From contig CM074522.1 of assembly GCA_037379345.1 (NCBI GenBank), positions 16,182,001-16,246,000 of the forward strand: 64,000 nucleotides of DNA. Direction: 5' to 3'. The translations under genes and the position numbers were made by a program. Below the pieces are notes generated by a model. The model saw only the letters and a program-made list of their open reading frames with translations, had not been told where the DNA came from and ran no database searches. The stretch is from Perna viridis (Eukaryota). This document shows, one piece after another, positions 36,411 to 64,000 of this stretch. Position 1 is the first letter of the stretch; every line of letters starts with the position of its first letter.

Positions 36411-36554
36411 ATGATGCAGTCCATGTGCAATGTAGATTTTTTTGTGATTTTTATTTTTGCGTTTTTGACTTTTGAGTGTGTAGCAAAAGTGAATGATTAC
36501 ATGAACTCAGAGGATTTAGCTGACAGTTTCCCTAATTTGAGTGGAAATGATGAG
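36411..36554 (+). CDS. C1QTNF12: FAM132-like gene exon 1 (signal peptide)
   Basis: MMQSMCNVDFFVIFIFAFLTFECVA-KVNDYMNSEDLADSFPNLSGNDE|gtaagc. Hydrophobic core with a CVA cleavage-like site; phase 0 fits the next exon. The link across the 16.5-kb intron is inferred. Confidence 0.68.
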
Positions 36555-39500
36555 GTAAGCATTTGTTTTATTTTATGATTTATGTACTTTTTCAAATTGT
36601 CAATTTTCTATTTCTGTGTTGTGCGCCTTTATGACAACTTGTTAGTTTTTTTTTATTTTAATACTATTCATTTCAATTAGCTTTCATAGAATGAACAATA
36701 TCGCTGAACGTACTTTGCAATGGGGGAAAAGGGGAAATGGGTGAAAGTTACTTAAGAGAGACGTGGTGAAGACAAATAGCCTCAGGATTAACTTATTTTG
36801 AAATCCAAATTTACGTAATTTTCTGAACTTGCATTTTGATCTAATCTATTATTGGAAACTGCAAAAGAAGTTCTTTAATTCAGTGGAAATTTGTTCACAA
36901 TGCAAAACATTAGCTACGCAGTTTTAACGACTCCACCGATTTCGCGTTGCATTTTGTCGTTGTTAAAAGTTCAATGAAGATGTCATTTCTTTTTTACACA
37001 ATAAAATTAGGAGCGAAATTTTCCTCAATATATAACGGATGTGGTCGTACCATGTCAACGAGACTGAAGAGTTGGTGTTGTTTGTGTTTTAGTCGTTTAG
37101 ATGCCTACAAAATATTTAGACTGTTTCCTCAATCGAACCGGTCAAAACCGAATTACAAATGTTTTAAAAAAACCGGAAACCTGTCTGCATGTTCAGAAAC
37201 TTGACAATACCAGCTATGTTCTAAAATCACTTTTACTACATGTGTATCAGTTTTGGTGGTTACCCAGAATGATTCAAGCAAACATCTGCTTAAACGAACT
37301 TTATGAACATTTTAATTCATACTTGTATCGTGATTGGAATTGGTTTAAGGAAATTATACTGTTGGAACCGCCGTTTCCGGTAGAATATATGCATATATGT
37401 ACATTTTTTGTGTTAAACATCGGATTTTCCTAATATGAACAACAAATCTGAAAATCAGTAAAATATTATAAGATCGTTCGCTTAAAGGAATATAGATCGT
37501 CAATGATGTTAACAATGTTCATGCATTTTACTTTTATGGGGATAGGTAAATTTGACCCTATCCCCTTCCATAAAAATCAAATGGTAGTTCCCTTAAATCT
37601 TGATTTTGCAAACATTTTAGACGGTGGGGATTTGACGTTCACAGAGTATTTTTTAAAACTTGAACAAGTATGTTTTCTCAGCTATTTGTTCATAGAAGCA
37701 CGATATATATTGAGTTTTTTTTTTAATTTGTATTTCTTTAATTGATTTATTGTCATCGTTCATTTGAATCCGAATAACTCCTTGATCTGTCTTGTAACTC
37801 TATAGCTCGATCTCTTTGATATCAATGATGATGTCAGGAGTTTTTCACGCTTAAAGTTTAAATTTAGATATCTTAAAAGATAGTCTCGTCTAGATAAAGT
37901 GTTAAACTAGATCGATTTCAATCTATTGAAATAATCAGTCTTTTGTGAATTAACCTTTTCATCTTACATGTACCAGCCTCCAAAAAGTCGTGGTGGAAGA
38001 AATCTTATCATGGTTTTGTGCAACGAGTTAAAGAACTGAAGCAAAATATTTTCATGACTTGAACTTATTACTGTAACAGTTTCAGCTCCCATCGGCCCTC
38101 AAAATTAATTATCAAACGATATCGCCTATTTCATCGATTTGATCGAAGAAAAAAACATTTTACGTTTTTGCTGAAATCTTCTGATTTTGAATTGATCCTT
38201 AATTTGAAAATAGTTCTTTAAAAAATCTGGAGTGCTTGGACATACTTTGCGTTTTTACACAAGCGACGAAGAACGCCCCCCCCCCAAAAAAAAAAAAATA
38301 AAATAAAATAAAATAAAAAATAAAAATAAAAAAGGGAGAAAATACGCTTTTCTTGTCCTTCCGATAATTAGGGGCTACTAATGTGGTGAATTTAGTCAAG
38401 AAGACTGATCTTATATGAACATATCATATTCATACCTAAAGAGCTTTACACTACTACAATATTCGAGTTTATTAAAATAGCCTGTTCGTTATGCTCGCTA
38501 TCTTTCAACACGAAAGCGATGTACGGTGTATCAACGTAGATATCTCGTATATCATACCCCACGCGCCATATGACAGTTTTTTCTTGTACTGACGATAAAA
38601 TTTGTAACTTTTTACAAGTTTTTATCTCACTTATCTCGTTCATTTTACTAAATACAACTTTTTTCTTTAATCATTAATCTACTGTACTGGTACTTGGCAA
38701 GAAAAGTATCCATCAAGACTTCACCGAACATTGTACAGATTCTAGCAGGCTACCTGTCGCCATTTTCACTGTTGGCGCGCGGACTTTGCCGCCAAATTTC
38801 TTATCTTCTGATGTACGTCAAGGCATCGCTTGAGACATTCATTCAGTAACCAACATTCTAATTGGATAGTAATATATCAATGTACAATTTATCATATTTT
38901 TCCTATTGTATTTTTCTTGTTGCTTTGATTACCGACATCAATAAAAATGTCAAGTCTGCAAAATTGCATGATGGAGATATTTCAATGATGTTGGCATTGT
39001 GTGTAACAGCATGCTAAGCATAACTGGAGTTTACTACATGCGTTCCAAAATTAAAGGAATTCAAACGATAAATATGTAGCATTGCTTGCTATATGTCATT
39101 CTAGAGGAAACATTTTAAGAGACAGGCGCGCTTGGTTTTGCCACAACGCTTTCATTCTGTAAAAATAAAAACTCTGTAAAAGGTGACAATTTCTCCTTAT
39201 TGTTTTATTCAAGTGGCTTATTCAGGAGTGGGAATATGGGCTTGGAACATTCTCTACCATGAGCAAATTATATGCTAGAATTCTCATTTCTATATACAAA
39301 TATTCATGGAACAGCGTCTGTATTCCTTGAGCGTTTCAACGGTATTTACTTGTTCTTTGCGTCAGCAAGTACTCTAGATTATACTGTATAAAATACAATG
39401 ATATAAGTATATTAATTTGATTTTTGTTTTGCTTGTAAAAATGTAATAGAAGCATTCAAAATGAATGCTATTCAACAAAAAATATTTATTCTTCTCGGTT

Positions 39501-42500
39501 CACATTTTGAACTTCAAATGTCTGCATGCCCCTTAAATTTAAATTTTAAAAGTTAAAAAAAAAAAGAAACAAAACGAAACAAAAAAAAAAAAAAAAACAC
39601 ACACAAAAAAAAACACACAAAATGTTGCCACTGTCACAGCAGCTATCATTGAAGTTCCCCAACTTCCGGTATTTCTACAATGAATATCGATGCAGACAAA
39701 GATTTTTTTAGTATATACTAATGACTTCCAATTTGAACTCACACCTCTTAATCAGTTATTTAGAAGTCTTTGGCGTCGTTAGTCTTTTTCTATAACACAA
39801 TGAGACCCGAAACCTGTTGTTAGTATGTCTACAAAAAGTTAATTTCTACCAAGAGCACACCACGCCCAATTTTCATCAAAATGTGAACTAATTATAACAG
39901 ATTATATGGCGGTGTTAGTTTTGACGCCCTTTTCTGTAAAATAAAAATAAAAGCCTTGTCTTGTGTGAGGTCTATTCCACTCGAGACTGTATTCCATTCT
40001 TAATAGCATCGAAAATCAAATGAGATCAGACTACTCGTGACCTAGTGCGTAATTAAATGGCTCTTATACAACACTCTAATCATTTTGAATGTATACATAT
40101 TATTTGAAATATCAAAAGGTCAATGTTCTAAAGCGTCATCCAATTCTTTAAAATACATCTATAATTTTGAAATTTGAGGCTTAGAAATTTTAATATTTTA
40201 ATCTTTTATACACTGTCATTAATGTATCTTGATGCTGATCCCGAACGGTTGCAAGGGGTTGGCACCCCCTATTTGATTGAAAAATTTCTCATTTTCGTGT
40301 GTAAAATTGACAAAAATGGCGAATATGTACTAGCACCCCTTTTTCCTGAGTAACCCCGATGGACCCCTCTTCTAAAGTGTCTGGATCCGCCCCGGTGCTG
40401 ACTATATTTTGAATATGATAATCAAATAATAAGGTTAGAGGTCATCATTCCCACTCAATGAGGCTATATATGAAAATCCTACATAGATTCTAGTGTAGAA
40501 TAATAAGTACACTTTTTGTCCCCATTTAAGTCGAGAACGCAATTTTATTGTTCTCATATTGAGAAATATCGGGCAATAATACTCATAATATCCGTAAATG
40601 ACTTTAAATGAGTGCATGATTGCGATTTTTTTTTTTAAGTCAGTTGTATTTCCGCAATAGTTGCAATCAATATTTCTTTGTCTATTTGTGCAAAGCTTAA
40701 CCGGAAGTTGTTTCTTTTATGATAACGTAAATTATAAACCAAATATTGTAAAAAAAATCATTGAACAACTGTTCAAATAAAACAAAACAAGCATTGTTGC
40801 AATATTGGAAAAAGTCTTTCTTGGAGTCGTTCTTTTAAAGTTTAGCCAACAATCCGCAAATTTTTTAGCATGTACATTAGAATGAGAGTGTAGAGCCTAG
40901 GACTAGGATTGTTTTTTTTTCAAACTGAGCCTTTGAAATAGGTAAAAATGCTCAACCTTGATTTTTGATTTAGCAGAATGTTTTATCTACCTCAATTTCG
41001 GTAATTTGCCACATAATCGCAGTGAAAATCGAGTGATTCCTCTCCAATTAGCTCAGTTGCACACGTTTTCAGCATTACACTGGCGATGGCCTCTCATGTA
41101 AATATTAGACTTCACAACAAGAGGACCACCTCAGTTGTCTCGGAACCTAGCTTGTTAGTGCGGGAGGTTGTGGGTTCGATGCACGGTCGAGACTTATGAA
41201 TGGTCAGTTATTGCTTCTACCCTGCCCGCGGTATGTTTTAGAGATAGTGACGACTTGTTGGCTTGGAGTCGGAATAATATGTCCGAGTGTATTGATATGC
41301 CTACCTGCATGCGGACTGTTGCTTCTGTGAACTATAGTGCAATTAGAGTATGGCTAGTACATTGCAGGGTCTGTTCGACTGCTAAAACGTTATCGTCCTC
41401 AAATGCATAAAATATCTACCACAAGACGTTAAATCACAATCAATCAAATAATCAAAACAAGAGCGTGCTTTAACTCAACTCGCGGAAAACATTTCGGGAG
41501 AACTAATAATCTGCTTTATATTGTAAACTTGAAGCCTATTTCTTCCAAACTTAATTCGCCTTATTATTAACGATGTAAGACCGAATTGTATGCTTATTTA
41601 GAAGAAGAGGTCATTTAGGTATACATTGAGTAGACAAGTGTACAATGGTAACGTCTTCACCGTTCCTTTGCCTATTCATCAATTTCAGGCTTAATAATCC
41701 TTGACTCGAAGTGGAACGACCAAATATATAAGAAATGCTATTATTGAAAGAAGCAATTACGACCTTTTTAAAACTGTTTGAAGTAAACAACATGTTCAAG
41801 TGTAATATATGTTGGGGTTTCAAAAGGTCGGTTCATTCAGTTTGAAGAGCAAATTGTAAAGTAAAAACAATTCACGTCATAAATATTTGTAACAACTGTT
41901 GTATTCTTGAAGACAACCCGGTTCTTTTCACGATGCAATTTATACATAAGTAAAAGCTTTCTCCGGATAATCCGTTACTGTTCATTTCGATACATTCTAA
42001 GTATAGTTGTTTTATTTTGAACTTTTTGGTATTTGTAAAGAGTAATCAAGGGAACCAAGGTTATAGTGGTAATCAAAGAATAACCAAGGGAGCCAAGGTT
42101 ATAGCGGTAATCGAAGAATAATCAAAGGGACTAAGGTTATAGCGGTAATCAAAGAGTAATCAAGGGAACCAAAATTCTAGCGGTAATCAAAAGAATGTAA
42201 TCCGGGGACAAAGAATAGACATGGAAAACAGTCATGCATAACAAAGAACATAAAGTAACTAAAATCATACATACAAAGTAACAAAAGCAAATGAGCAACT
42301 CGGACTCCACTAAAAACTGGGAGCATGGACCAGGTACACCGGTAGGGTAAGCGCCCTATGCTTTTCTAGAAACACCCGCCGAGTTGCTTATAGAAAGTAA
42401 AGTCCGGGGTAGGCTTCAAATCTAAGTGCCCTTTCAGATTTGAAATAATTTGTTTCATAATTACATAATTATATTTCAAGATTAAACATAAAACTTTTGA

Positions 42501-45500
42501 CATACATGTAAGTAGAGTTTTAGGTGCAGGGTATCGTTTTACAAAGCTTACTTAAGACTTACGTGCACGTAAGTCCCATTGAGTATGTAAGCTTTGTGAG
42601 TTATTTGTGAAACGACGCGAGCAATCCTAAGAAAGACGTATCATTAACGCAGATTGCATTCTGTAATAAAATTTAAAAAAAAAAAAAAACTTCCATGTTT
42701 AATTGACTGTGACTCCATAAATATTCTTGTCAAAATATTACTTATTAAAACAAATAATTTGAAATTAAGCAAGTATCACATAACTTAACCATAAAAATGA
42801 AATATTTAATGCTCAAATAAGATTAATTTATATAATTAGTGAGAGCAAATTAATACGAATGTTTATCAATAATTGTATTAAAGCCTTCTTCGATCAATTC
42901 ATTCGGTGCATGTCTTACAATTTTCATTGCAGTAAAATAATTAATTTATGGTTTTAGCAACATCGTTGTAAAAGCTATATCATGAGAATATTAGAATCGA
43001 AATAAATCACGGAAACTCCATTTTATCATTGTTTGACCATAGACCCGTGGTCGAACAATAATAAAATGGAGTTTCCGTGATCTTTTTCAATTCTAATAGG
43101 ACAAGTTTCTTCGTATTTTTGAATAAGCGCAGCCTAAGAGTTGCACGATATGTTAGTCATGTGTTTATCACTTTTCACCAAGGTTGTGGTCTAATGAGCT
43201 TGGAGCACTTCATATTAGAATTAAGTTTTTACCTCCATAGTTCATTCGTAATTTTATTTTTTCAGAAAATGGAATGATTTCTTTCTATTTTTATGATTAT
43301 GGTAAAAAAATCGAACTTTGTGGCAATACATAACCAACAAGAATATGCACAAAACGGAAACGTGAAGACAGCAAGCAAAGTCATGGGAAAAAAAATAAGA
43401 GCAAGCTCCAAGCAGCGGCAGACACTCGTTTCATCTCTTACTAAAGTGAATTTCGAACGTCAAACGCTTTTCGGAGCTTGAAATAAGTAGTAGTTGTATA
43501 CCAAGAAACGAAAAAAGAATTCTGTAAGTTGTCTTTTGGAAATCAAAGAAATCGCTACAATTTACGTTGCGATTATTTGTCGTCGCGAATTCAGCAAAAA
43601 TAAAATTGTTTTCTGCACTGTAAGATTAGCGACCATGTTAACTGAGAAATATATGAAAAAAACAGGATATTTTACACGCTAACTAAGTAAGACAAGTTCA
43701 AAGATATGTGCATGTTCATTACCCCTGCCATACCAGGTGAGATTTTGGCGTACGCTAAAGATTAAAACATTTAAAGATGTGATTCGAGTAGTTCGTATAA
43801 ACAAACGGATAATAAAAAACACACACACAAGGGAGGAGGTATACTCAGACAAGTATTGTTTTAAACAAAATCGTATTTATGTATTGTTTTCCAATAGATA
43901 AAAGTATTCATAGAATATACATACTCTGATTTATGTATATATATAATGGCAATTTTGTAGAGGGATTCAAGTTTTGCTACTAATCGGAGGCGCCTAGTTG
44001 AATCACCGCGGCAATGGTTCAATACTGGGAGAAAACCATTATGTATCTGTCAAAAGTCCAAGCTGTGGCCAGAGAGGATACACTTAATGCAAGAAAAATG
44101 TAAAATTATAGAATGTCTTAAAAATTAACATCAATTTTTTGTATGTTAAATGCCGAAGTCTCACCCAATTCTGACTCGGGAACTTCGATGGCTCCACCAT
44201 TCAGAGCTCGTGCATAACCTTTTCTAAAGTCCTGGCGACGGGACATTAACATTATTGATTGCCGAGTGGAACAAGGCTCAAAATTTCGGGTGATAATTTT
44301 TCGAAAAAAACACGATTTTCTGCAAAAGTAAATATTGTTCCAATTTTTAGGAGAGTTGAGCGTCTCATCCAATCCCCTCTAAATCCACCACTGCTGGTGA
44401 CACAAGAGTAATAACTTTTTCATTTTACATAAAATGAAATTTAATTTAAGTTGTTATATCATTTGGGGGGCAATATAGATATAATATCGGACAATTTTAG
44501 AACAATTTCTGACAATTCTACTCCTCAGATAGTTACTATCAATTACATGTATATCCAAAAATATTTCTGGTAACTGATAGGCTATAAAATATCAGACAAT
44601 TAACGCCAGAATAGTTTCTGATAAGAACTTTCCCTGGATCAGATTCCACTGTAAAAAGGTTGAATACAGATCATGCAGTGACGAATCCAGAGGAGGGATT
44701 GAAACACCCCTTTGTTTGGAGTTTTTTAATTAAAATTAGGACAATATTGAGTAAATGTAAACTTGGAACCCTTTTTTATATAAATTTCTGGATCGGACAG
44801 CTTACTTTGATATATTTTTGGATGAACCCCTGTCATGCGCATTACTGTATACAATTATTATCTAGGACGACTTTGAAATTACGACATTAATTTACTCATC
44901 GACTTACAACAGCGATTGACTATGTACTAAATCAATGCATCGATCTAGCTTACTAACCCAAATAAAGAGATTATCAAGAATATCAGATTTCCGCATTCTC
45001 TTTGATTGCAAGGAAACGGTGATTGCCAAGGCCTTGACTCTGTTTAGAATGAAAAGAATTTGCAAATCATTCTGACAGTGATACGATGAGAGTAACACAA
45101 GAAAGAACTGGACTACGTGAACTGGACCGCTGTTCTAAATTGTTTTTGGTTTTTGGACGTATTAGAAAATTCTAAAATTTAAATTGAATGTATAGTAATT
45201 GCCATCCATAATTTTCTTTGATGTTTGAAGCGTATGTTTTTATAGCTGGTAACATGTGTAATTGGCTATAAAAATTGCAAATCGTGGCACAACCTACAAT
45301 CGAAGACAGCATGGACTTCAACGACCTATAGATAATTTTCTCCGCATATCTATAACCGCTTCCTGATCTACTATGTATCACTCGCTTGCTTAAAGTTTGT
45401 TTGTTTGTTTGTTGGGGTTTAACATCCGAGCAGCAATATTTCAGCTATTTTCAGACAATGAACATGAAATGGATGATAAAATGAACATGAAATGATAAAA

Positions 45501-48500
45501 AAAGGATGGGTCACAAGGATAATAGAGTCGACAAATTTTGATTGCCACTGGAAAAAGGGGGATGGGTACGGTCGGGCAATTTAGCCTCCTGTGGCGGAGC
45601 GCAAAGGTTCCTACTCCTATCGAAGACCACAGCAGGGTTCTTTAACGTGCGAGGAACGTGGCATTTTTCCCAACACGGTGCACCACTATGGTTTGCGGTC
45701 AGGTTTTCCGTATTATAGCCTGACAACCCCAGCATGTAACATGCCAGGGGTACCCCATTCCACCACCTGGGGCACACATCCCAGTTGCTCTGTGGGCAGA
45801 GCGCCTAGCCCCCGGCTAGGTTTCTGAGCACTATTTAGTCGCCTTTTACGACAAGCTTAGCGCTGCTGCAGGCCTATTCTTTTGACACCCGGACCTGCAC
45901 GGGGCGTTTGCTTAAAGACTCTGTTATAAACAATAGGGGAAAATCCCATGGCATGAGTACAACTCAACACTAATCCGCGAAGCTACTTCCTTTGTACTGT
46001 ACTTTTTTGGATAAAGAGGTGGGGTTAGGTACTGAAGTTAGCTTTGAAATAGCGAAAATGCCATCTCTGCCGGAGATATATGTTGCAAGGCGATGTACAT
46101 TATTTTCAAAAGGACAACCCCTTTATTTATTTACTTTTGTAAGGTACATTTACTAAACAAAATGCTTCAGGATAATTACATACAAATTATAAAGTAAATA
46201 GAAAAAACATATTTTTTCAAAACCTTTGGACGTCCGTGATTTATCCTTTTTGACGGATTTCTAAAAAAACTTCCCTACTGATTACGAATGATGTAATAAT
46301 TGTAAAACTACGTAAAATAACATAAAAAAATAGGATGTCGAGCCTCGCACGTAACACGTGAACAAATGTAAGAAACAAAATTCTTCGAAAAATATTTCAT
46401 AATAATTACATGCTTTAGGGTCAAGCAATATAATGAACGCTGGATACCTATGTTTTGAACGAAAATTTTGTTTCGTCATTTTTGTTTTCCACGTCTTCAA
46501 CTTTGATCTGTAACTAAATTGGTGCGACAAGGTGAATGATCAAAATCTTTATCCATTTTCCGTATTTTTTCTTTTCCGATTTTTATTGAATTTATTTTGC
46601 ACTTTCCGCGGCTAGTAGTCTTTTGGAATTTCGTTATGACCGATTGCTATATATGTAGTATATTGTATTTCTGTGCGAGTGAGAGGAGCTCTTTTATTAG
46701 CAGAGGACGCAGTCCTCAGAATAGTATTCAGTGCATGATAGAAGCACTGAGAGTCTGATTTCAGTCTCACAGAATGTTATGTCTTGTCGGAAATTTCCAT
46801 GCAGAGCAAGATGGTTTCATATCTTCTTCGTTTCAATTTATTCTGGTCTTCAATATTTGCTTAAATTTAGAGACTTTTTTCGTATCCTATATGCCATGAG
46901 AGTAAGCATTTCTGGCTGAATGGCTCTAGCCAGAAAGTACTTATTACAAATACCGGTCTCATTCATAAGCGACAAGAAGCATCAAGGGTTTAGAAGAGTT
47001 CGATGCGGTAGAACGAAATGCGTGAGGCACAGTTTGTATATGGACCGGACGTTTGCACAAAACCTACCATCTTCGTGAAGACAAATTCTACCATTCCAAA
47101 TATCTGTGCAAAATTAACTCATGACTGGATCAGAAAAAATAAGGATTTTAGAATACACTTTTAATTTGTAATGAAATTGTTTTAAATGTTTTGCAAGGTT
47201 GCTGCCTTCAACATGCATGTAATATCGGGTATCACAATTTTGATCTTCGCCCGGTTGCTCCCATTTCACCATTTAAAAAAACAAATATAGTGATTTACCT
47301 GCAGTTTGTCTGAATGTACCATTTGACCTCTTTTACAATCGGAAGCAGATATAAATATTTAGATTTTTTTCTTTATAGTGTGTTGTTTGCAGAAATTCAC
47401 GAACAGGAAGAAAAGTTCATTTTCCGGAATTGTAATGTTCATCCCATCACATTTAAAAAAATCGTACTATCAAGTAAAAGTTATTAATGAGTTAGACAGG
47501 AAATGCACATGGTTAGGAAAGGAAATAATCGTTATGTTTCAAATTCTTTATTTTACGCTCAATTCATTTTGAAAAAAATAAAAATATACAGAACCCGATT
47601 AATCGGAACACCGTGCACTCGATTTGTCGGCTAAGATTTTTTTGCCTTAACGTAGAGGTTATTATCTGACGAAGAACAAACTTGTGAGACCGAGAGTAGA
47701 TTTTTTTGTCACCCATTTACACGGCGTTCCTCTTGCAGTATTGGATGGGTCTGTGCTACAGACTTATCCAAGTGCTATATATATATTACTCCTTTATAAT
47801 TTTGTAATTAAGTTCACCAAAAGACCTTTTGTTATTAACCTTGACCAAATTATAGGACGTAATTTTATACAGGAATTACTGAAGGACTACTTTATTTTTT
47901 GAATAACGGAAATGTAAATACAAGGTTTAAAAACATGTTATCTTCCGGTTTTCTACAAGTACATAGACCCCCTAGCATTCCATTAACTTCGTCAAACAAA
48001 GGATGTGTCACGGAACGCAATATTAATACATGCAGTACAAACAGATGATAGCACAATTTGCGTGTAGCAACCTATAACCATCTATACACAGGAAGTTAAT
48101 TAAAAGCCATTAGCCAATCGGAGCCATTGTTACAAACTCAAACAATGGTCCGTTAAATCTGCAATCATTTTTCAAATCGACAAGAACAATGGCTGCTGTC
48201 AAAACGTAAACAAATTATGTTGCTACAAAGTACACTCGATTATTCGTTTGATTTAAATCGCAATTTTCAGGGTCACGGAAGTGTTTGATCGCAATCACTT
48301 AACTGGTAGATTATTTTATAATCAACACAATCGGGTACACCCAAGATTTCTGTTATTGTTCGGAAGAAAAAGATAAAAATCTTTATTTGGTGAATAACCG
48401 TTTAAACACAAGGGATTAGGTGTTGGATATCACAAGTTGAAAGAAACGAAGAATAAATGTGAAACAATTCGAATAAAAATTAAAAGAACTCTTGAACTTC

Positions 48501-51500: not shown

Positions 51501-54500
51501 CATAATCATATATTACACTCATGCTATGTATAAAGCTAATCCGGGATAGTGTACATTGTTTTAATCATATTTGTTTCTCGAAAGAATAGTACACTTGATC
51601 TTACTTCGGTAATTTGAAAACTATAAAACCTGGCTAATTAAAGTAAAAGACTAATTTTCCAGACTTTGAAGAAAATCATTTGATTTCAAGGTCATTCTAC
51701 TTTTGTCTTCACTGATTCAGCATTTTCATTTAAAGTCCTTCCACATATTAGAATTTAATCACTAATCAATGAAAAATCGGTAAAGTTTTCTATCAAGATA
51801 ATATAACCTTTTCATTAGGCTAATTTGAAATAAAACTGCATGAAACTAAATAAGAGTGGTATTTGGAAGATAAAATTTGTAAAATTAAAGATTCATATTT
51901 ATGATTACACGAGAAAGTAACAAGTGTTTCTGGTTAGCGGAATATTAAAGATCAGTGAAAAATAATGTAATAGAAAATGATAGATACTTAAATTTTCTTT
52001 GATTAATTGAGTAAAATGTATATTTTCCCCCGCATGAGAAGATAGCAAATTTATCAGTAGGATGGGCGCCTTACTATCATAGAAAATTGACAAGTTTTAG
52101 TCCAACCTAAGAAATTATCCCAGCATGATAGTGGGGTTTTGGCCGGCAGGGGAGTGCAATCGATTCACATTCATGTATACAAAATCTATCTTTGATAAAT
52201 AAAAATCTTGAACGATTTAAAGAATTTGGAGCATGTGATACTGAATTGTTTAAAAGAGATTGGGTCAGATGACAAATTGCAATCATTTTTTCATTTGATA
52301 ATACCATTGAAAAAAGCCTTAATTATTCCCAATCTGACATGAAATTTAGCTTACTTCTACCCCCTCAGCTAATCGGCCAATTATTTAGTACTTCACTCCT
52401 GGAGCAAAATTGGCTTTCATCTTTGAAGTACTTTTACCCGTTGCTATCGACGTTGAAAGGCTATATTGTTCCGAAGGTGAAAAATGAGAGAAAAGATGGA
52501 AAGAGATATGTCTGGAAAAGGTCTTTGTGTCCTAGTATAAATACATGTATTTTAAGTGGAGGTCTCTATGTAAAGTTATTGCCTTAAGTCATAGATACTG
52601 GACTGAATCAATTAATGAATTTCGGTAGAAAATGTTTTTCAAGGGGCTGTAAAATCGGATACCGAAATATGGTCGCACGTAAAGCCACTTATTCAGTGTT
52701 TAGAAAGCAGCTTGTGCGACACAAATAAGAGGTGACAAAATAAGTCATAAAAATAAAATTTTGGACAAAGATACACGGTGCGACAATGTTATATTCCAAC
52801 TTTGTGGCTGGTGACGATGTATTTAACCACCTTGACACTACTTCGATTGCTATGTATTTTTTTTCATACGAAATCAGCTGTTAAAACAAAATATAACATA
52901 CCTTAATTTCAATGATTCTAAAGTGCTGATAGTGTTAGCACAATAGACCGTGTTAACTGTTGAATATTCGATCAGGATGCGTGGAGCATGCTCAATATTC
53001 ACTTCCGTGCGGAAAATTCTGTTGTTCTACCCAAGCCCCAACTCGCGGAATTGTAAATTTAACACGAAACGGTCTATTATTGTTTCAATACTTTTCAGGA
53101 ACTTGAAGATGTACGACGAAAAGCTGTAGATGCCAAAGACAGTTGGATTACGTTTGTCAGACATTCCAAAAGACCACAAAATAACAGGCAACCGCGAAAA
53201 CGAAAGGATAAGAAGAGTAAACGATTGGCTTGTTCACATGTAAGTTATATAAAATTTTTGTAATAAAACACGGTTTAAACGAAATCGTTATTTCAAAAGT
53301 CAGTTGACAGACAAAACTGTAAAAATTGAAACAACGAACACAATACAAAATTGAGAAAAACGCCAAATTATGATCAATCCAGACTATACAACGAACAAGA
53401 TACATTTGCACAAATGCGAGAAAAATTATAACAAACTTGGCTTACACCAACAACACACATGCACTGTTATGGTATTGCAAACAGATATATATATATATAT
53501 ATATCTGTTTGCAATACCATAACAGTGCATGTGTGTTGTTGGTGTAAGCCAAGTTTGTTATNNNNNNNNNNNNNNNNNNNNNNNNNNNNNNNNNNNNNNN
53601 NNNNNNNNNNNNNNNNNNNNNNNNNNNNNNNNNNNNNNNNNNNNNNNNNNNNNNNNNNNNNNNNNNNNNNNNNNNNNNNNNNNNNNNNNNNNNNNNNNNG
53701 TCAAAATTGAAGAAGCTAGAACAAACCGAGACGATTGACGGATGTATATTACAAATATTGTTTTTAAAAAAAATCTACTGATTTCATTTGCAGTCACATT
53801 TACATGATAATTGTAGCAGAGATTTGATTTCGTGAACTAAATGAACGATGTTTAATTGTATCTAATTTCTTGTATAGGGTTGTGTACCTGGTCCAGCTGG
53901 ACCTCGAGGCCCACCCGGACCCCCGGGACCCGCAGGGGCAGCTATAACGAAAGAAATGTTAATGGACGAATTTAAGGAACTCGTTCGAGGTAGGTCTTGA
54001 CTATAAATGTTTGGATTCATGTTTATGCTTATTGAAACAAGATGGACAGACTGTGAAAAAATGAAGATTGAAAGTATGACCTGACCCTCAATACTTATTT
54101 TTCCTTTTAAAAATATACTGGCATTCAAACGAAGAACAAAAAAATAAGTCGTTAACTGAAATAACATTCAAAGTCTTTCTTCGCCTATAGTATAAGTCAT
54201 GCAGTCGTTTCAGTAAATGTGGTATATCCTCTGGCATTCATCTTTCATTTGTAAGACCAAGCCCAATTCTATCTGTCAAAAATTTTAGTATTATACGCCA
54301 ATTGATACTTTACCATGCAATTGGTCATCGAGATTGTTTTGTGATTTAACTGGCCCATCAATTTTACTAGCCGCAATCTTTGGTCCAGTGGTTCATTCTA
54401 GTACTATCCACTGTGAGGTTGTCCTTGATTAAAGTTCTATCATCTACCAAAATGTTAGTCGAAAGAAAAATAACTTCGTTGCACAGTCTGCAAAATAAGC

Positions 54501-57500: not shown

Positions 57501-60500
57501 GTTGTAATAGGTAATCCATACAAGCAGCAGATTTATCAATTATCTCTTAACATCTCAATCAATTCTCGTCGAACATCAATTCCAATCGTTAAAACATAAG
57601 ATGAGAACATCGTCAATACTGATAAAAAGGCGAGATAGCGGTCTGTTCGATTAGCATTTTACAAAGCACAATACAGGTAATAAAATATACGAACAGAGGT
57701 TTATTCGATTAGTATTTTATATCGTTCAAGACAGGTAAATACAGATGTTCTCGTCTTTATTTGTCTATTACAGAGGGAATATTGTCTGTCATCTTTTCGC
57801 TAACTAGACGAGATTCTGTTACATTTTTAATTTATTTCCCAGACAAAGGCATTCAACTTCTTGTCAAAATGTGTTGATTTTACGTGTTCCTGTTCGTTTA
57901 GAATTTCATTTTTGAAGTTTGAGATACAAAAATGCCATTCAAACACACCTTGTAGATATTGCTTTATTGCAATGGTATGCTAATTAGTTTACCCCTAAGT
58001 ATCGGTTATGATAAATATTGCTGTTAACGCAGCATGCCTTTATAATGTACTGAAAGTTACTACAGTTGTATGTTATCTAAGGTAGACGGTAGTGTAAGTC
58101 AGGCGCGGGTACAGAAATTTACAAATGAGGTAGGGGAGTGATTTGCTCAGTTTTGCTGCGTTTTTGTATACAAAGTTTTCTAACAAAATTATAAAAAAAC
58201 GGAAGAGTGGTTCAAATCCCCAGAATCCTCTTTCTGAACCCTCTTCTACGTTGGTGCTGGATGCTGGGAGATGTGTTGAAAATTATGTTTATTTCACTTT
58301 TTTGACAAAATAATTACCTGAAACCACCCCTTTCTTACATATAGGATACGCAACTAGAGTCACCGGAATAAGTAGTTATATATTTTGAACTTTGGCGAAA
58401 GATTAATAGAATATTCAAAAAGTTAAAACAATTCTATCTACAAAAAACAATTGCCGTTCCCCCTTTTGTGCCTTATCACCCCATGTTCCGTTTAATGAAT
58501 TATGTTGTAAATATTAAAAAAAATAAATCTTAAGGATTTAGGTAAGGGACACAACTCACACAAATCATTGGAACGTTTGTATTTACCATTTAACATAAAT
58601 TCCATGTAAGCATCAAAGTAAGTTGGACTGATTTCATTCTGTTTCAAATGAATGCTTTAGAGGCTTTCGTAAAATTTAATGTGATACAACCATATCACTG
58701 ATTTCAAGAGTTATGTTCCTTACCCTAGGTCTACCTCCTTAAACAATACAAACATTAGAACGCTGTATCTTTGTTTATTTTTAAACTCTTAGACTGAGGC
58801 AAAAGAAGGTATAGAATGATGCAAATATTAGCTTCAGTAAGGCTCAAATTCCAAGCATGGTTTTTTGAAAATGGAATTATTTTACCTGATCCACAAAAAA
58901 TATATAAGAGCGATCATAAATTTTGCACTTTACTTCTTTCTGTAGTAGAATCTAAATAAAAACTCTTGTACTGAAAGAAAGATGCAATTAATTTTTACAC
59001 ATAGATCAAATACCAAACTGGTTACCTGTTTCCTTTTATCATTAGTTAATGAGCGTCAGGTATCAGGGTCGATACGGATGTTGGCAAAGCATTCTGGTCG
59101 CGTGTTGCAACGATTCTTAGGTCAAAGGTCATTTCATTATCTTCATGTTGTATGTCTACCGCATACGCATGGTTTTTACACGTGTCGAATGGCAGAAAAA
59201 ATTGCTGTACCAGAGTTCGAACAGAGCTAACAAGCTTGGTTATTTTTTTTTAAACTGTAGATTTCATGTTAATGATGTGAGGCATGGTGTTTAAAGTGTT
59301 AATTAGTGCCCTAACGTACTATTGAGAATTCTCCAAACCAAAACCGCTCGGTATAATTACATATTTTAATCACGATAGTTAAGTACTATTACACTATACA
59401 CTAGAGCCATCCCTTTATTAATCTTAATTTGTATCTTACGTCAATTTCTGTGGATACATTCAGTACATTTCTTGGTTTCTTTGGTAACAATATTTTTTTT
59501 TTAAATTCAACAACACTAACAAAAGGATTACAAAAAATGACCTAAAAGACAATTCTATATTTTAGAGGCTGCAGAAAAACGTGTTCAAGAATTAATAGCA
59601 GAAAAGGTACGTTAAACTACTCTAAAGTAAAACTCACTGCATGCCTACCCACGTCATACTACTCTAAAGTAAAACTCATTGCATGCCTACCCACGTCATA
59701 CTACCCTAAAGTAAAACTCACTGCATGCCTACCCACGTCATACTACTCTAAAGTAAAACTCATTGCATGCCTACCCACGTCATACTACTCTAAAGTAAAA
59801 CTCACTGCATGCCTACCCACGTCATACTACTCTAAAGTAAAACTCATTGCATGTCTACCCGTCGCGTTTTCTTTCTTTTTATAAAAATGTCTTCACTTTT
59901 GGTAATTTAACTCGACAATTAAAGCAATGTAGTCTCCAATTCGGAAACCTGATTTCAATTTCAAAGAAGCCTAGTATTTTTCACACCTGTTCTATTCCTT
60001 CAATGTTCTCAGAATAAGTAGTCATTGTCTTCCCAGAAGAGAATTTTCTGCTTTCACCTGCACAATCATGAACCGTTGGTATTGAAGTTGTAAGTTAAAT
60101 GTATAATTATTAACGAGCACATTAATTAGTTAAACTGATAACGAGGAAGGACAAACAAATCAATACATGCATAGTGGTGAAGGTTTCAACATAATTTATT
60201 GAAACTTCCATCGGATGTAATGAACTGACTCACAGACGAATCTGAAGACGGGCTGATTCCAACGCTTCAAAAAATAAACTTGTGATGTATACTTTTTCTT
60301 TGTTTTCCAGTGTCCAAATTGTGTTGACAACTTAAACAACACAAACAGCATACCTCTACCAACTACTGGTGGTGTTTTCGATTCTGTTACCAGGGTAACG
60401 GTTGGCTTCAACATGCGCATGCGCAGAAATGTTGCAATTTCGGGTAGAACATTTATGGAACTCAGTTCATTCCATCAGGTAAGGAAACTCAACTTTGATA

Positions 60501-62910
60501 AAGGGTTCTGTTTCCTATTTTAAATTCCAAATATCGTGTTCATGTATAGCATTAAATTTTGTTTTCACGTTTTAATACTTAATGCATTTGTTGTAATTTC
60601 GAATTCTAATTTCCAATTGCACTGTTGGACTCTAAATTTTTTTAATGTGCATGTGCAATCAAATTAAATTTGCGACCATTCAATGCACGATTGACACCGC
60701 TAAAGATCCATAAACATTGCACGGTAATCTCCTATGGGAAGGAACAATAACGATCCCACGAAATCAGAGAAAAAACACAACATACACAGTAAAAATAACA
60801 ACAACAAATAACAATAAAAAAAACAGCAAACAACAGACAAAAATACACCAAAAAAACACAAAAAGAAAAAAAACAACTAACAACAAACAAAAAAGAAACC
60901 GCTAAAGTACCACATACGCGCATATTAAACTAAAAAAAATGGGCGTGAATTAATTCTGCTTCGGGTCATTCGCAGTTGTCTCTCTCTTGACTCATTCGTC
61001 GTTGTTACCTGAACACACGACCACACAGATAAAATTTCAACATATTTTTATAGCCATTCAATGCCGGATCTTTTAACAGAGGAGAAAATTTTAATATAAG
61101 AAATGGACGTTTTGGAGCACCAAAGAGTGGCATATACCAATTTTCTGTAAATCTCCATATCAGGATTAAAAGGAACGGTAGAAAGCTAAAACTCAGGAAA
61201 AGAGATAACATTAGGACGCAGATCTGTATAGATTCATTGTGTCAAAAGTATACGTAAGTAATTACTATATGTATTTGACTTTTGACCTAAAAATATACTT
61301 CAACAAATAAATATTCACATACTCTTTTGGACCATGTTTTAGATTTTTTTTCTATCGGGACTATCGCTTCAGGGTAATGAATACAATTATTTGCAAGCAA
61401 ACTCATGACGCTGTTAAGATACAATTTGAATTCAGATAGTCATACTAAAAGAGTTTGCGTTGTAATTCTTTTACATCTATCTCAGGTACTTTCATTTTAT
61501 ACGTATCGTATATTTCTTCAAGTTCGTTGACCCCTACAGAGGACTTTAGCCGAAGGAATTTTAGTAATGCACTCTATTCGTTCGTCGATCAATCTGGTAA
61601 ATTAGTATTCCGTACTTGCAGATATTTACTTGATATATGGTTTATTGCTTTACCATGATAAGTTAAAGGATCAAGTTTGTCTTTTTTACAAATTCATTCA
61701 TTATTTTTTGTTGAGTTATGCCCTTGGAGTAATGCATAAAAGAACTCAGTTTTCCAAACATTTTTTCGTTTACAAATTATGCATAAATTTTGTTTCTATT
61801 CTTAACTACATATTATTCTTCGGGTAGGTGACTTTATATTGTCAAGAAAGAGTCTCAGAATGCTTTTTTAAATAGGTGTTCAGGAGCAGATCCAAGAATT
61901 TATAAGTTCGGTCTAGAAATGTTTTATGGGAAGTTTCCGGCGATCATATTATTTTTTCACTTCGATTCTTGTCGAAACATGTCGCAACTCGGCTTATCTC
62001 CCGCTCTGAGAAAATTTAGAATGAAATTCCTCGCCTTAGAAATTTCGAAGGTTAACAAATACATGCATGCACGATGCCCTTTCTTTACGATATTTGTTTT
62101 TATTCCAGATCATTACAACATATCTCGGGTTTAGAAAGTAACAGTAAATTTTTCACAGTGAGCTTTATGGGATTTCTGGAATTATCGGTAATTATACATT
62201 ATTTTATTGACTTTGTTAAGAAATACAGTAAAAACGTCTTAACCAAACCCCTTTTTTGAACTTTAAAATTGGTTCAGTTTAGACAGGTGTTCGGTTTACC
62301 AAGGTTTAACGTACATTTATTAGCCTGATCGTGTGTTACTATAGTACTATTGCATGGTTTTCCATATTGGCTTAGTTATTGGTCCGATGCTAGCCATATT
62401 GGATTGAGGCGCAGCCGAACTCAGGCAATATGGAAAACCATGATATGCAATTATACTAACTAGCCCAATACGTTATATTGGCCTAGGCCAATATGGATTT
62501 TAACCAGGCCAATATGAAGTATTGGTAGGGTAAAATCCGTATTGGACGGCTAAATCCCGTATTGGCACACTTATGTATTTTGCATTGTATTGGCAGTTTT
62601 GATCATATTTAGGATGATATTCGAACGTTATTCAATAATTCGGCGTATCACCTTCTACTGCAGGAAATATGTATATAATGACATACTGTATAAAAAGTAA
62701 ATTGCATGACCCTAAAAGGTTTCCGTAACTTATATCAAATCCTGTTGGATATGATATTTCCCCTTACTTTTTCAAATAAGAAACTGAAGTACAGCTGTAT
62801 TTTTTTTTCAGGCTGGACAATACACATCAGTATATGTCGATAATGCTTCAAGGAACAATGTTATAATTCAAACAACATCAGACTTTAGTGGTGTCTTGGT
62901 AGGTTTGTGA
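36411..62910 (+). CDS. C1QTNF12: Adipolin/erythroferrone-like secreted C1q/TNF-related protein (FAM132 family; 327 aa, 8 coding exons)
   Basis: join(36411..36554,53099..53239,53878..53989,59566..59606,60311..60478,61054..61253,62109..62187,62812..62910) = 984 nt, GT-AG, in frame. Features in order: signal peptide; DAKDSWITFVRH; polybasic tract; (GXY)6; ITKEMLMDEFKELVREAAEKR; C1q head with GRFGAPKSGIYQFSVNLH, ICIDSLCQ, SGLESNSKFFT, AGQYTSVYVDNAS, SDFSGVLVG. These match adipolin motifs as I recall them (WLNFVRR, EFQELLKEATERR, GRFTAPVSGIFQFS, ICIESLCQ, SGLESNSRVFT, AGQYASVFVDN, FSGLLLG). Likely co-orthologous to C1QTNF12 and ERFE, so the symbol is provisional. Confidence 0.88.
41124..41455 (+). 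mobile_element. tRNA-derived SINE (V-domain type)
   Basis: B-box GGTTCGATG near 41173; ttggcttggagtcggaataatatgtccgagtg...gcggactgttgcttctgtgaacta resembles the V-SINE domain as I recall it; (CAAT)n-like tail; flanking direct repeat AACAAGAG. Confidence 0.6.
42039..42412 (-). mobile_element. 3'-UTR-only fragment of the Penelope-like element with four 38-bp terminal repeats
   Basis: Matches 541-803. The terminal unit agagtaatcaagggaaccaaggttatagtggtaatcaa is repeated about 4 times at 42039-42190. Confidence 0.85.
42988..43099. repeat. Long imperfect hairpin (foldback remnant)
   Basis: Arms tattagaat..aaa..aatcacggaaactccattttatcattgtttgacca / tggtcgaacaataataaaatggagtttccgtgat..ttt..attctaata. 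Confidence 0.85.
45395..45904 (-). mobile_element. GC-rich SINE-like non-autonomous retroelement with (AAAC)n tail and 12-13-bp TSD
   Basis: TSD cgcttgcttaaa (45383-45394) / cgtttgcttaaa (45905-45916); (GTTT)n on + strand = 3' tail; internal GCACGTTAAAGAACCC...TTCGATAGGAGTAGG on the - strand. Confidence 0.78.
48830..49326 (+). mobile_element. Degenerate second copy of the Penelope-like element (RT end plus 3' UTR)
   Basis: Translates with frameshifts as YYKRDDLSFRIVKFP..YGVFI*QL..YASACQNCADILYRARLL..RLKSSLYK..GRHYEFVDRY. It is followed by ccggtgcacctggtcc...ttccctttgattattc, homologous to the reverse complement of 541-760. Confidence 0.72.
49708..49832. mobile_element. PIF/Harbinger-type MITE with CAG TSD
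   Basis: TIRs ccttttcacaaaaaatcgtaag / cttacgactttttgtgaaaagg; CAG on both flanks. Related ends at 42527-42620. Confidence 0.65.
53099..53239 (+). CDS. C1QTNF12: FAM132-like gene exon 2 (conserved W motif and polybasic tract)
   Basis: ttttcag|ELEDVRRKAVDAKDSWITFVRHSKRPQNNRQPRKRKDKKSKRLACSH|gtaagt. Confidence 0.88.
53428..53561. repeat. Perfect 134-bp palindrome centred on (AT)n, abutting the assembly gap
   Basis: ataacaaacttggcttacacc...gcaaacag(at)n ctgtttgc...ggtgtaagccaagtttgttat, then N run. Confidence 0.9.
53562..53699. other. Assembly gap (N run) in intron 2 of the FAM132-like gene
   Basis: Run of N. Confidence 1.
53878..53989 (+). CDS. C1QTNF12: FAM132-like gene exon 3 (collagen-like segment)
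   Basis: gtatag|GCVPGPAGPRGPPGPPGPAGAAITKEMLMDEFKELVR(E)|gtaggt. Confidence 0.92.
56115..56324 (+). mobile_element. TTAA-specific MITE (Kolobok-type), copy 2
   Basis: TTAA-GGAGGTTGACCTATAGTAAGGGACA...TGTCCCTTACCCTAGGTCAATCTCC-TTAA: ~25-bp TIRs with a TTAA TSD. Confidence 0.82.
56434..56771. mobile_element. TA-flanked MITE (GGG...CCC ends); partial copies at 8301-8410 and, inverted, at 57400-57460
   Basis: TIRs TAgggtttgtaagtctcgt / acgaaacttacatacccTA; the left end recurs at ~8300. Confidence 0.72.
57133..57275. repeat. Inverted repeat with a duplicated arm
   Basis: ttgctcccactatcaaatatgcag is followed by two reverse-complement copies, ctgcat(g/a)tttgatagtgggagcaa. Confidence 0.8.
58534..58738 (-). 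mobile_element. TTAA-specific MITE (Kolobok-type), copy 3, inverted
   Basis: Reverse complement of 56115-56324; TTAA at 58530-58533 and 58739-58742. Confidence 0.8.
59566..59606 (+). CDS. C1QTNF12: FAM132-like gene exon 4 (41 nt)
   Basis: ttttag|(E)AAEKRVQELIAEK|gtacgt; phase 1 in, phase 0 out. Confidence 0.85.
59616..59861 (+). repeat. Minisatellite, 42-bp unit x6 (84-bp higher-order dimer x3)
   Basis: actactctaaagtaaaactca(c/t)tgcatgcctacccacgtcat at 59616, 59658, 59700, 59742, 59784 and 59826; C and T variants alternate strictly. Confidence 0.95.
60311..60478 (+). CDS. C1QTNF12: FAM132-like gene exon 5
   Basis: ttccag|CPNCVDNLNNTNSIPLPTTGGVFDSVTRVTVGFNMRMRRNVAISGRTFMELSSFHQ|gtaagg. Confidence 0.88.
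61054..61253 (+). CDS. C1QTNF12: FAM132-like gene exon 6 (C1q/TNF-like head)
   Basis: ttatag|PFNAGSFNRGENFNIRNGRFGAPKSGIYQFSVNLHIRIKRNGRKLKLRKRDNIRTQICIDSLCQKY(T)|gtaagt. Confidence 0.93.
62109..62187 (+). CDS. C1QTNF12: FAM132-like gene exon 7
   Basis: ttccag|(T)SLQHISGLESNSKFFTVSFMGFLELS|gtaatt; inside ORF 62074..62259. Confidence 0.93.
62335..62565. mobile_element. Palindrome-rich element remnant in intron 7 of the FAM132-like gene
   Basis: Repeated ccatattgg/ccaatatgg motifs; arms agta..ata.ttgcat..catggttttccatattg / caatatggaaaaccatg..tgcaat.atact around gaggcgcagccga. Confidence 0.5.
62812..62910 (+). CDS. C1QTNF12: FAM132-like gene exon 8 (terminal)
   Basis: ttttcag|AGQYTSVYVDNASRNNVIIQTTSDFSGVLVGL* (TGA). 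Confidence 0.93.
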   Translation, partial: AGQYTSVYVDNASRNNVIIQTTSDFSGVLVGL

Positions 62911-64000
62911 CGATTCTTTTGAGAACATTGAAGTCAAGCATCGCCATACTTGCATGAATGTTATACCGGACCTCAACTTCGTCATACTTTCAAGAGAGTA
63001 TATCATTCCCGTTCGTTCCAACTACGTCATTACAATATGAAACACCTTTTACATTCTAAAAAACAAAATTAACTGTAATGAAAGTTGGTGTCGGAGTTAT
63101 ATACAGACCTTTGTTTTACCACTTGTCTCTATTTACTAGAGACTAACACAATCTCGGACGGTAGGGTTCGTTTCTTACTTTCTAAGAACCGAGTAACATC
63201 TATATAAAGTCAGTGTGTCTGTTATTATGCAGCATTGCTTCACAGTTAAGAAATATTTTCGTTTACTGGTATTGTATATATATATATATCTTTTGAAAAA
63301 AATATAAAGAAATACATAAGATCTGAAGAAAGATGATGAATTTTATCCCCTGATTGCTCTAGGTAGGAGATTTGGACTATTCTCCTTTATCATTCTTATC
63401 ACCAAAAGACCGGGAGAAGGAAAGGGTCAACTTTCATGATAGTGATATCATTTCAATATGAAGATTTCTAGACTTGTGCTGCATCAAAAATAAATTCTAA
63501 ATATTTCAATGGCAAAAGAACACGGAACATTACGTTCATGAAATATCCGTCTAAAGTATCGGGTAGATGGTGCTACATTTAATTAAATAAGCATTTAAAA
63601 AAGTTTATAAATTAATTCAAACACCTAGCAAAATTGAAGTAATGGAAAAAATCTTGTATTCCTATTCCCATATGATATGCCTTATTTTGACATGGAGTTG
63701 TACTTAAGAAAATTATACAAATGAAGCTTGAAAATTTTATTCATTTCATGATATTCGAAATCTTTCATTTCGATTGATAAATTGGGTTACCTCCCTTATT
63801 CTAACTTTACTATAAACTTGAAATGGTTGTTTGTGTTAAATTTGTAATCATTGAACTTGCTGCTTCCAATAAGACAACACATTGATAATTCTAATTAGAA
63901 TAATTCTTATTCGAAATACGCCAAACACCTTGCAGAGAAAAAAAAACTCTGTTTTTTGTTTGTTTTTGTTTTTTTATTCGTGGGTAGGGGTTGGCGGTAA

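Follow-up and report, generated by a model that had tools for sequence, protein, structure and literature searches.

The DNA analysed here, referred to as the window, is a stretch of 64,000 nucleotides (nt) from the mussel Perna viridis (assembly GCA_037379345.1, contig CM074522.1, positions 16,182,001 to 16,246,000 of the forward strand). Its forward strand carries a gene of the FAM132 family at 36411–62910, which consists of eight exons (E1 to E8) spread over 26.5 kb (Table 1). The vertebrate members of this family are adipolin (C1QTNF12, also FAM132A or CTRP12) and erythroferrone (ERFE, also FAM132B or CTRP15). The locus is intact and transcribed, and is almost certainly a single-copy mussel member of the adipolin/erythroferrone family and the pro-ortholog of both C1QTNF12 and ERFE. 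An earlier account of this DNA, made from the letters only and called here the sequence-only reading, had proposed a gene of eight in-frame GT–AG exons at this place.

All seven introns begin with GT and end with AG, and the acceptors, as read from the sequence, lie behind pyrimidine-rich tracts. The donors are, in order, GTAAGC, GTAAGT, GTAGGT, GTACGT, GTAAGG, GTAAGT and GTAATT. The exons end in phases 0, 0, 1, 0, 0, 2 and 0 and add up to 984 nt, or 327 codons and a TGA, without an internal stop. An in-frame stop lies nine codons 5' of the first ATG. The eight exons and 327-residue product of the sequence-only reading are thereby upheld, and the motifs that it quoted were all found on the forward strand in the places it gave.

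Table 1. Exons, selected introns and other features of the FAM132 gene in the window
Feature	Position	Strand	Content
Exon 1	36411–36554	+	48 codons; start codon, signal-peptide-like core, acidic linker; donor GAG/GTAAGC
Intron 1	36555–53098	+	16,544 nt, phase 0
Exon 2	53099–53239	+	47 codons, 141 nt; Trp helix DAKDSWITFVR and cationic tract KRPQNNRQPRKRKDKKSKR
Assembly gap (N run)	53562–53699	.	wholly within intron 2 (53240–53877), touches no exon
Exon 3	53878–53989	+	112 nt, end phase 1; collagen-like (GXY)6 and first half of helical neck ITKEMLMDEFKELVR
Exon 4	59566–59606	+	41 nt; second half of neck helix, (E)AAEKRVQELIAEK
Exon 5	60311–60478	+	56 codons; CPNC Cys pair, variable N-glycan-rich linker, first head strands from ~60380
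Exon 6	61054–61253	+	200 nt, end phase 2; C1q head core, G.F.AP..G.Y.F, ICIDSLCQ
Exon 7	62109–62187	+	79 nt; SLQHISGLESNSKFFTVSFMGFLELS
Exon 8, coding part	62812–62910	+	32 codons and TGA at 62908–62910; AGQYTSVYVDNAS...FSGVLVGL
3' untranslated region	62911–63696	+	spliced contig to at least 63223; second contig 63244–63696; AATAAA 63489, ATTAAA 63582

The N run in intron 2 begins 322 nt past the donor and ends 178 nt ahead of the acceptor. Across the E2/E3 joint the residues read RLACSH/GCVPGP, as against RLACAH/GCVPGP in Mytilus, and the alignment is gapless. Since the end of E2 and the start of E3 are both in phase 0, the ortholog alignment is free of indels and the Mytilus exons are equal in size, the coding sequence is independent of the gap. 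The length of intron 2 in the assembly is provisional given the N run, as is the contiguity of its flanks.

Transcript evidence comes from the reads and contigs of four public runs placed on 58001–64000, where the joint positions carry an ambiguity of 1–2 nt. In run X2, a contig of 1,552 nt (depth 22) has GT..AG joints that fit 59606>60311, 60478>61054, 61253>62109 and 62187>62812, that is, E4/E5/E6/E7/E8, and extends into the 3' untranslated region. Another 650 nt of this contig lie upstream of E4, of which E1 to E3 together would take 397 nt. Run X1 contributes intronic pieces without a spliced form. Sixteen public runs guessed to be RNA (five studies, same organism) contain 0.14 of the sampled words of 60311–62910, compared with an exonic share of 0.166 for that interval, and one further run contains 0.18. 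The sequence-only reading had named splice-junction mapping as a check. This came out in part: E4 to E8 are joined in a transcript, and the joints from E1 to E4, including the long one at 36554>53099, were not seen in RNA. The joins from E1 to E4 are supported by the 80%-identical Mytilus protein, with its matching exon sizes.

Protein architecture and family membership

From its N-terminus, the product runs through a signal peptide and an acidic linker to an amphipathic Trp helix (DSWITFV) and a cationic tract; six GXY triplets, a long helical neck, a CxxC pair and a C1q/TNF-like head follow. Its hydrophobic core spans residues 9–21, where the 11-residue Kyte–Doolittle mean peaks at 2.9, and the signal peptide is likely cleaved after CVA (residue 25, at 36485), giving CVA/K. 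The acidic linker of exon 1 is weakly conserved and holds an NLS sequon. The Trp helix (53129–53161) fits the family pattern D-x-x-[DS]-x-W-x-x-F, whose Trp is W82 in human ERFE; W64 and F67 recur in 86 of the 87 family members and are invariant in alignment A1. Ten of the 19 residues of the cationic tract (53168–53224) are K or R, and the tract aligns with the basic tracts of adipolin and ERFE. The dibasic runs RKRK and KSKR stand at the aligned position of the adipolin furin site. The six triplets were located by regular expression at 53890–53943, and score 19.6 bits against Pfam Collagen, which is below the cut-off. The collagen-like stretch is followed by the neck expected of the family, with E126–F127 conserved in 92% of members. 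The CPNC pair occupies residues 147–150 (60311–60322).

The head is supported by a score of 30.7 bits for exon 6 against the Pfam C1q domain PF00386 (cut-off 23.7). It carries the family motifs [LI]C[IV].S.C, GLES.S and Q[YW].S[VI].[VL]DN, and C260, C265, S301 and N306 are invariant in 87 sequences. A structural view is available from the AlphaFold model of the 80%-identical Mytilus ortholog, not of the window product itself, which has a mean predicted local distance difference test score (pLDDT) of 78. In that model, helices span residues 57–68 (the Trp motif) and 117–143 (the neck), and the jelly-roll head matches the structures of C1QL1–3, Cbln1, Caprin-2 and RANKL. A PDB sequence search with exon 6 returned generic C1q relatives only (cerebellin, collagen X and caprin-2), and no ERFE or adipolin entry was matched.

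Database searches were carried out with single exons or with proteins that such searches had found; the joined model of 327 residues was used in the frame check, local BLAST, alignments and tree. A full HMMER (phmmer) pass of exon 6 against 1.84 billion cluster representatives gave 121 matches. The best full-length matches are adipolin-like proteins (Mercenaria, Centruroides, Branchiostoma and Myxine), Adipolin (Holothuria and birds) and erythroferrone (mammals). Searches with two of the exon 6 matches found proteins named adipolin-like in bivalves (Mytilus, Mizuhopecten, Ostrea, Crassostrea virginica, Mya and Ruditapes), in gastropods (Haliotis, Babylonia, Littorina and Gigantopelta) and in echinoderms (crinoids, sea urchins, a brittle star and holothurians), as well as in hemichordates, amphioxus (named C1QTNF12), horseshoe crabs and scorpions. 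Unnamed homologs occur in Solemya, Potamilus and Batillaria, and there are also members in a centipede and a nematomorph. The protein of the window species itself was not found in a collection of 5.8 billion proteins, the nearest being that of Mytilus (80%).

Local BLAST places the joined model at 79.6% identity to the Mytilus galloprovincialis adipolin-like protein (325 residues, gene on OZ263157.1) over residues 2–327, at 48–56% to other bivalves, 43% to amphioxus, ~36–43% to vertebrate adipolins and ~31% to ERFE. The Mytilus gene is also the sister of the window gene in the tree, has 7/7 introns in common with it, and has a first intron of 16 kb. The 20% divergence between the two proteins lies mainly in the signal peptide and the exon 5 linker, and the intron lengths differ. 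Over its full length the model can be aligned with the proteins of Mytilus, scallop, oyster and Solemya, with no indel at the joins from E1 to E4.

A maximum-likelihood tree (LG+C20+F+G4) was built from 42 rows: 17 invertebrate sequences including the model, 10 labelled adipolin, 8 ERFE and, as an outgroup restricted to the mussel's own genome and without vertebrate CTRP1–11, 7 C1q-domain-containing (C1qDC) domains. FAM132 is split from the own-genome C1qDC domains at 100/99. The window gene is sister to Mytilus (100/99), within the bivalve and mollusc clade. The adipolin and ERFE sequences of vertebrates all fall into one clade (99/95) with no invertebrate inside. The sequence-only reading had assigned the gene to this family and had proposed a tree as the test. 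The phmmer ranking, BLAST identity and tree bear the assignment out, in that the gene groups with adipolin and ERFE proteins and not with own-genome C1qDC (100/99). The motif and Pfam results agree with the architecture that it described (signal peptide, W motif, polybasic tract, (GXY)6, neck and C1q/TNF head). In the tree, the protein labelled 'adipolin' in the elephant shark (Callorhinchus milii, MU249842.1) joins the ERFE clade (98/96). It has also retained CQEC, a CxxC of the ERFE type, and may be a misnamed shark ERFE ortholog.

Both vertebrate paralogs resemble the window protein in overall plan. Adipolin is ~36–43% identical over most of its length, with the same architecture and intron positions. 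ERFE has the same order of parts, including the neck Phe, the post-neck Cys pair, and C-x4-C and GLES.S in the head, but differs in its ~31% identity and in a long Ala/Pro-rich insert ahead of the head. Of 33 invertebrate members, 26 retain the CxxC pair, as the window protein does with CPNC; of 23 ERFE sequences, 20 retain the first Cys and 11 the second. The pair has been lost from the adipolins of jawed vertebrates, with 29 of 31 gapped at this place. In this feature the invertebrate proteins appear more ERFE-like than the name 'adipolin-like' implies. Adipolin is an adipokine, and mussels are without comparable tissue. The role of ERFE in hepcidin suppression during erythropoiesis likewise has no counterpart here. 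The hepcidin model PF06446 of Pfam gave nothing above its cut-off in the own genome, a negative of little weight for so short a peptide.

Automatic annotation has already brought the family and its invertebrate members into RefSeq and UniProt, the 80%-identical mussel protein among them. RefSeq lists adipolin-like genes for many molluscs, echinoderms, hemichordates, amphioxus and chelicerates. The novelty claimed by the sequence-only reading was thus overstated on the gene itself. No functional study of any invertebrate adipolin-like protein was found in the literature, the one mollusc-related mention being a Lingula accession in a table. Nothing relevant was found there on C1QTNF12 as a BMP antagonist, and nothing on adipolin in echinoderms. 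The gene itself is an ordinary ortholog of an annotated family, and its value lies in comparison.

Gene structure across animals

The genomic loci of seven family members were fetched, their exons mapped exactly, and their introns compared on the alignment (Table 2). The 112-nt exon 3 of the window is also found in Mytilus, amphioxus, Saccoglossus and the elephant shark, and the 41-nt exon 4 in Mytilus, scorpion, Saccoglossus and amphioxus. Exon 7 has a constant size of 79 nt except in turtle ERFE (76 nt), and the last coding exon measures 99 nt in all eight genes. Every one of the seven window introns occurs in the same column and phase in Mytilus and amphioxus. Six of the seven are common to Xenopus adipolin, turtle ERFE and the elephant-shark gene, the match of intron 1 being approximate, as it sits in a poorly aligned linker. 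In these three vertebrate genes the equivalents of exons 4 and 5 are fused, and exon 6 is split into 109 and 91 nt (= 200) by a phase-1 intron. A long first intron also recurs in the orthologs, with 15.9 kb in Mytilus, 18.5 kb in the elephant shark, 25 kb in Xenopus and 29 kb in amphioxus.

Table 2. Sizes of coding exons in eight FAM132 genes, in nt and in 5' to 3' order
Gene	Exon sizes
Window	144, 141, 112, 41, 168, 200, 79, 99
Mytilus	135, 141, 112, 41, 171, 200, 79, 99
Amphioxus	183, 138, 112, 41, 159, 191, 79, 99
Scorpion	99, 108, 103, 41, 150, 203, 79, 99
Saccoglossus (one extra 5' intron)	86, 94, 105, 112, 41, 174, 209, 79, 99
Xenopus adipolin	171, 120, 121, 185, 109, 91, 79, 99
Turtle ERFE	195, 123, 103, 224, 109, 91, 76, 99
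Elephant-shark gene	159, 111, 112, 203, 109, 91, 79, 99

The intron state common to protostomes and invertebrate deuterostomes indicates that this state is ancestral. Adipolin and ERFE alike have lost intron 4 and gained the phase-1 intron in exon 6, which places their duplication on the vertebrate stem, after both changes. It follows from a duplication on the vertebrate stem that the mussel gene is the pro-ortholog of adipolin and ERFE. The introns are evidence for pre-duplication status that is independent of the tree and, we think, stronger than it. The sequence-only reading had regarded the gene as a single ortholog predating the duplication, and this is sustained by the vertebrate clade (99/95), the shared introns and the single copy, with a p value of 0.056 for the competing topology considered below. 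Nearly the whole of the exon–intron structure predates vertebrates.

Two of the compared genes show peculiarities of their own. In the Saccoglossus kowalevskii ortholog (GL012873.1) the additional intron, which interrupts the 5' part of the coding sequence, is in phase 2, and there are introns as long as 40.6 and 17.3 kb; in the scorpion gene all introns but the first have shrunk to 65–241 nt.

Proposed function and alternative readings

The N-terminal part of human ERFE contains a hydrophobic segment (residues 81–86, with the invariant W82), a cationic segment (96–107), a collagen segment (109–125) and a helical segment (126–148, with F136), all four of which contribute to the binding of bone morphogenetic proteins (BMPs; PMC10692919). 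The substitution W82A or a loss of positive charge abolishes hepcidin suppression and weakens BMP binding, and W82 has been modelled between both Trp residues of the W-x-x-W pocket of the BMP, which also takes the type I receptor (PMC10692919). A second study has modelled this helix, the first that is conserved in ERFE, in the type I receptor site of BMP6, and shows that Cys155, Cys157 and Cys208 act with the collagen repeat to assemble hexamers from a C1q-driven trimer (PMC10772735).

All four of these segments are present in the window protein, in the same order, which suggests an oligomeric extracellular trap for BMP ligands as the best-guess mechanism. Under this proposal, and as in ERFE, the head, collagen stalk and neck would form trimers, which the CxxC cysteines would link to one another in larger oligomers. 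The N-terminal Trp helix would insert into the type-I-receptor groove (the W-x-x-W pocket) of BMP-family dimers, and the cationic tract would add avidity for heparan sulfate and ligand. The protein would then tune BMP signalling locally or through the haemolymph, and cleavage at RKRK or KSKR could release an isoform consisting of the head only. A potential ligand is available, as the own genome encodes a BMP2/4 ortholog (C2:44199714–44200016) that scores 180 bits to human BMP2 and has the pocket sequence WNDWIVAP. Complex prediction for the exon-2 peptide with a dimer of the mature domain of this BMP2/4 gave a median score of 0.33 (mark 0.34), and one control gave 0.22, a result that carries no weight on either side of the binding question. 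The mature BMP2/4 domain follows a long K/R run, and the own genome has at least 18 TGF-beta-family matches in all, including a BMP3- or BMP5–8-like one on C4.

Granted the family identity, a secreted oligomeric BMP-ligand trap is put forward tentatively, with slightly less than an even chance of being correct. The explanation as a whole (family member, pro-ortholog and BMP trap) seems to us marginally on the probable side. The sequence-only reading had inferred an older endocrine or paracrine role. A more specific possibility, and a somewhat doubtful one, is that the ancestral FAM132 protein was already an oligomeric extracellular trap for BMP-family ligands in the bilaterian ancestor and that the mussel gene still acts in this way. 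The full set of ERFE BMP-binding features (Trp helix, cationic tract, collagen, neck Phe and CxxC) in any case predates vertebrates, adipose tissue, red-cell hormones and hepcidin. If the ancestral trap is real, the mussel protein might, for example, tune BMP2/4 in shell-field or dorsoventral patterning or in tissue homeostasis, and ERFE, with its control of hepcidin, would be an old BMP antagonist that vertebrates co-opted. The 'receptor' of adipolin/CTRP12 may then be a ligand of the BMP/TGF-beta family, and FAM132 would join noggin, chordin, gremlin/DAN and follistatin as a class of BMP antagonists that is new and deeply conserved. The proposal offers a concrete and cheap hypothesis for the unstudied invertebrate members, and for adipolin, which still has no receptor.

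Several observations weigh against this interpretation, some bearing on the gene and others on its function. When the invertebrates and jawed-vertebrate adipolin were grouped with ERFE outside, the approximately unbiased (AU) test gave a difference of 4.1 log-likelihood units (p = 0.056), so that the topology with ERFE splitting first is disfavoured, just short of rejection. Among the reads placed on 58001–64000, the joints E1/E2, E2/E3 and E3/E4 were not seen in RNA. X21 and X22, deep raw RNA runs of 2026 that give no strand or junction counts, yielded no exon reads in the 19–24% of each that was read, which suggests that expression is restricted or low and not ubiquitous; silence is not proven by this. 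For all invertebrate members, BMP binding, processing and oligomer formation are so far predictions. Lastly, vertebrate adipolin keeps the same Trp helix, and no report of adipolin binding BMPs was found in the literature; the helix may thus serve another partner.

This last point leads to the main rival, in which the gene is the same family member but acts like adipolin/CTRP12, as a circulating ligand for a cell-surface receptor with metabolic or anti-inflammatory signalling of the Akt/MAPK type. Convertase cleavage in the basic tract would then switch between full-length and globular isoforms, and the Trp helix would serve in oligomerisation or receptor contact rather than BMP capture. CTRP12, for which no receptor is known, is cut by furin inside an N-terminal KKXR motif (PMC12913486). 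In the alignment, this place is taken in the window protein by the basic runs RKRK and KSKR. The name 'adipolin-like' given by NCBI follows from higher scores against adipolin (~36–43%) than against ERFE (~31%), but this difference is attributable to the faster evolution of ERFE, visible as longer tree branches, and not to orthology with adipolin alone. Furthermore, the mollusc protein keeps the ERFE-type CxxC that jawed-vertebrate adipolin has lost, and there is no known receptor to test against. We consider such an adipolin-like ligand rather unlikely as the explanation; it is not exclusive of the BMP trap.

A second alternative is that the protein is a pattern-recognition lectin of the bivalve C1qDC type, with a head that binds microbial glycans, and that its likeness to adipolin and ERFE is generic. 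Bivalve genomes contain hundreds of immune C1qDC genes, tandemly expanded and mostly without collagen (PMC6835236), and the own genome has at least 29 other C1q-like matches. Bivalve C1qDC proteins (sghC1q, C1q-like type II and multi-C1q) are, like the window protein, secreted with a C-terminal globular C1q domain. However, the domain of the own-genome matches lies in one open frame of 130–390 residues, whereas the window gene has eight exons, with the head split over four of them, a collagen stalk and a Trp helix, and separates in the tree from seven own-genome C1qDCs. After exon 6 itself, its best match in the own genome is a single-open-frame C1q domain with E = 3e-4 and 42% identity, and exons 2 and 5 match only themselves in the 723-Mb assembly. 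The N-terminal motif, collagen, neck and intron positions are common to the vertebrate FAM132 genes, and the gene is single-copy and 1:1 across molluscs. Based on the tree (100/99), the eight-exon structure, the shared FAM132 introns and the single copy, a generic C1qDC gene is rejected, and the lectin reading is very improbable. Two claims of the sequence-only reading, that the gene is single and that it differs from the expanded C1qDC family, are accordingly confirmed by the uniqueness of exons 2 and 5 and by the tree, exon number, collagen stalk and copy number.

The comparison also bears on published surveys. Collagen-stalked C1q proteins have been described as absent from C. virginica and as non-orthologous among bivalves (PMC6835236). 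The C. virginica protein named 'Adipolin' (A0A8B8EDD7) combines (GXY)6 with a Pfam C1q domain, and its gene corresponds 1:1 to those of the other bivalves. A 1:1 collagen-stalked C1q gene across bivalves, C. virginica included, corrects that statement, and it seems that the FAM132 family was missed in C1qDC censuses.

A third alternative supposes that the upstream part of the model is wrong, through another transcript start or an extra exon hidden in the assembly gap, and that the protein made is therefore other than the 327-residue chain. The three joints from E1 to E4 are not covered by RNA and the content of the gap is unread, which leaves some room for this, but four bivalve proteins (Mytilus, scallop, oyster and Solemya) are indel-free at these joins, the Mytilus exons measure 135, 141, 112 and 41 nt, and the phases fit. 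The 650 nt of the X2 contig before E4 would also suffice for the 397 nt of E1 to E3 and a 5' untranslated region. An exon hidden in the gap is rejected by the gapless ortholog alignment, the equal Mytilus exon sizes (141 and 112 nt) and the fitting phases, and a faulty upstream model is altogether hardly to be expected. A pseudogene is rejected.

Repeats and other sequence features

Three of the introns contain repeats. In intron 3, at 58541–58748, there is an interspersed repeat of ~205 bp, with more than 2,500 first-look candidates in the own genome and scored copies that are 88–91% identical. Its last ~60 nt also match in reverse beside other copies, which gives it the look of a terminal inverted repeat, similar to that of a miniature inverted-repeat transposable element (MITE). 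The depth of the RNA runs over this repeat is very high, with reads joining opposite strands. Intron 4 carries a tandem repeat of 42 nt in 6.0 copies (59609–59860, 95% matching) that begins 3 nt past the exon 4 donor and contains donor-like sites of the GTAAAA type. In intron 1, a tandem repeat of 38 nt is present in 4.2 copies at 42037–42196. Upstream of the gene, positions 1–36000 of the window contain only two open frames of at least 110 residues, one on the reverse strand (13550–13993) and one on the forward strand (32860–33234).

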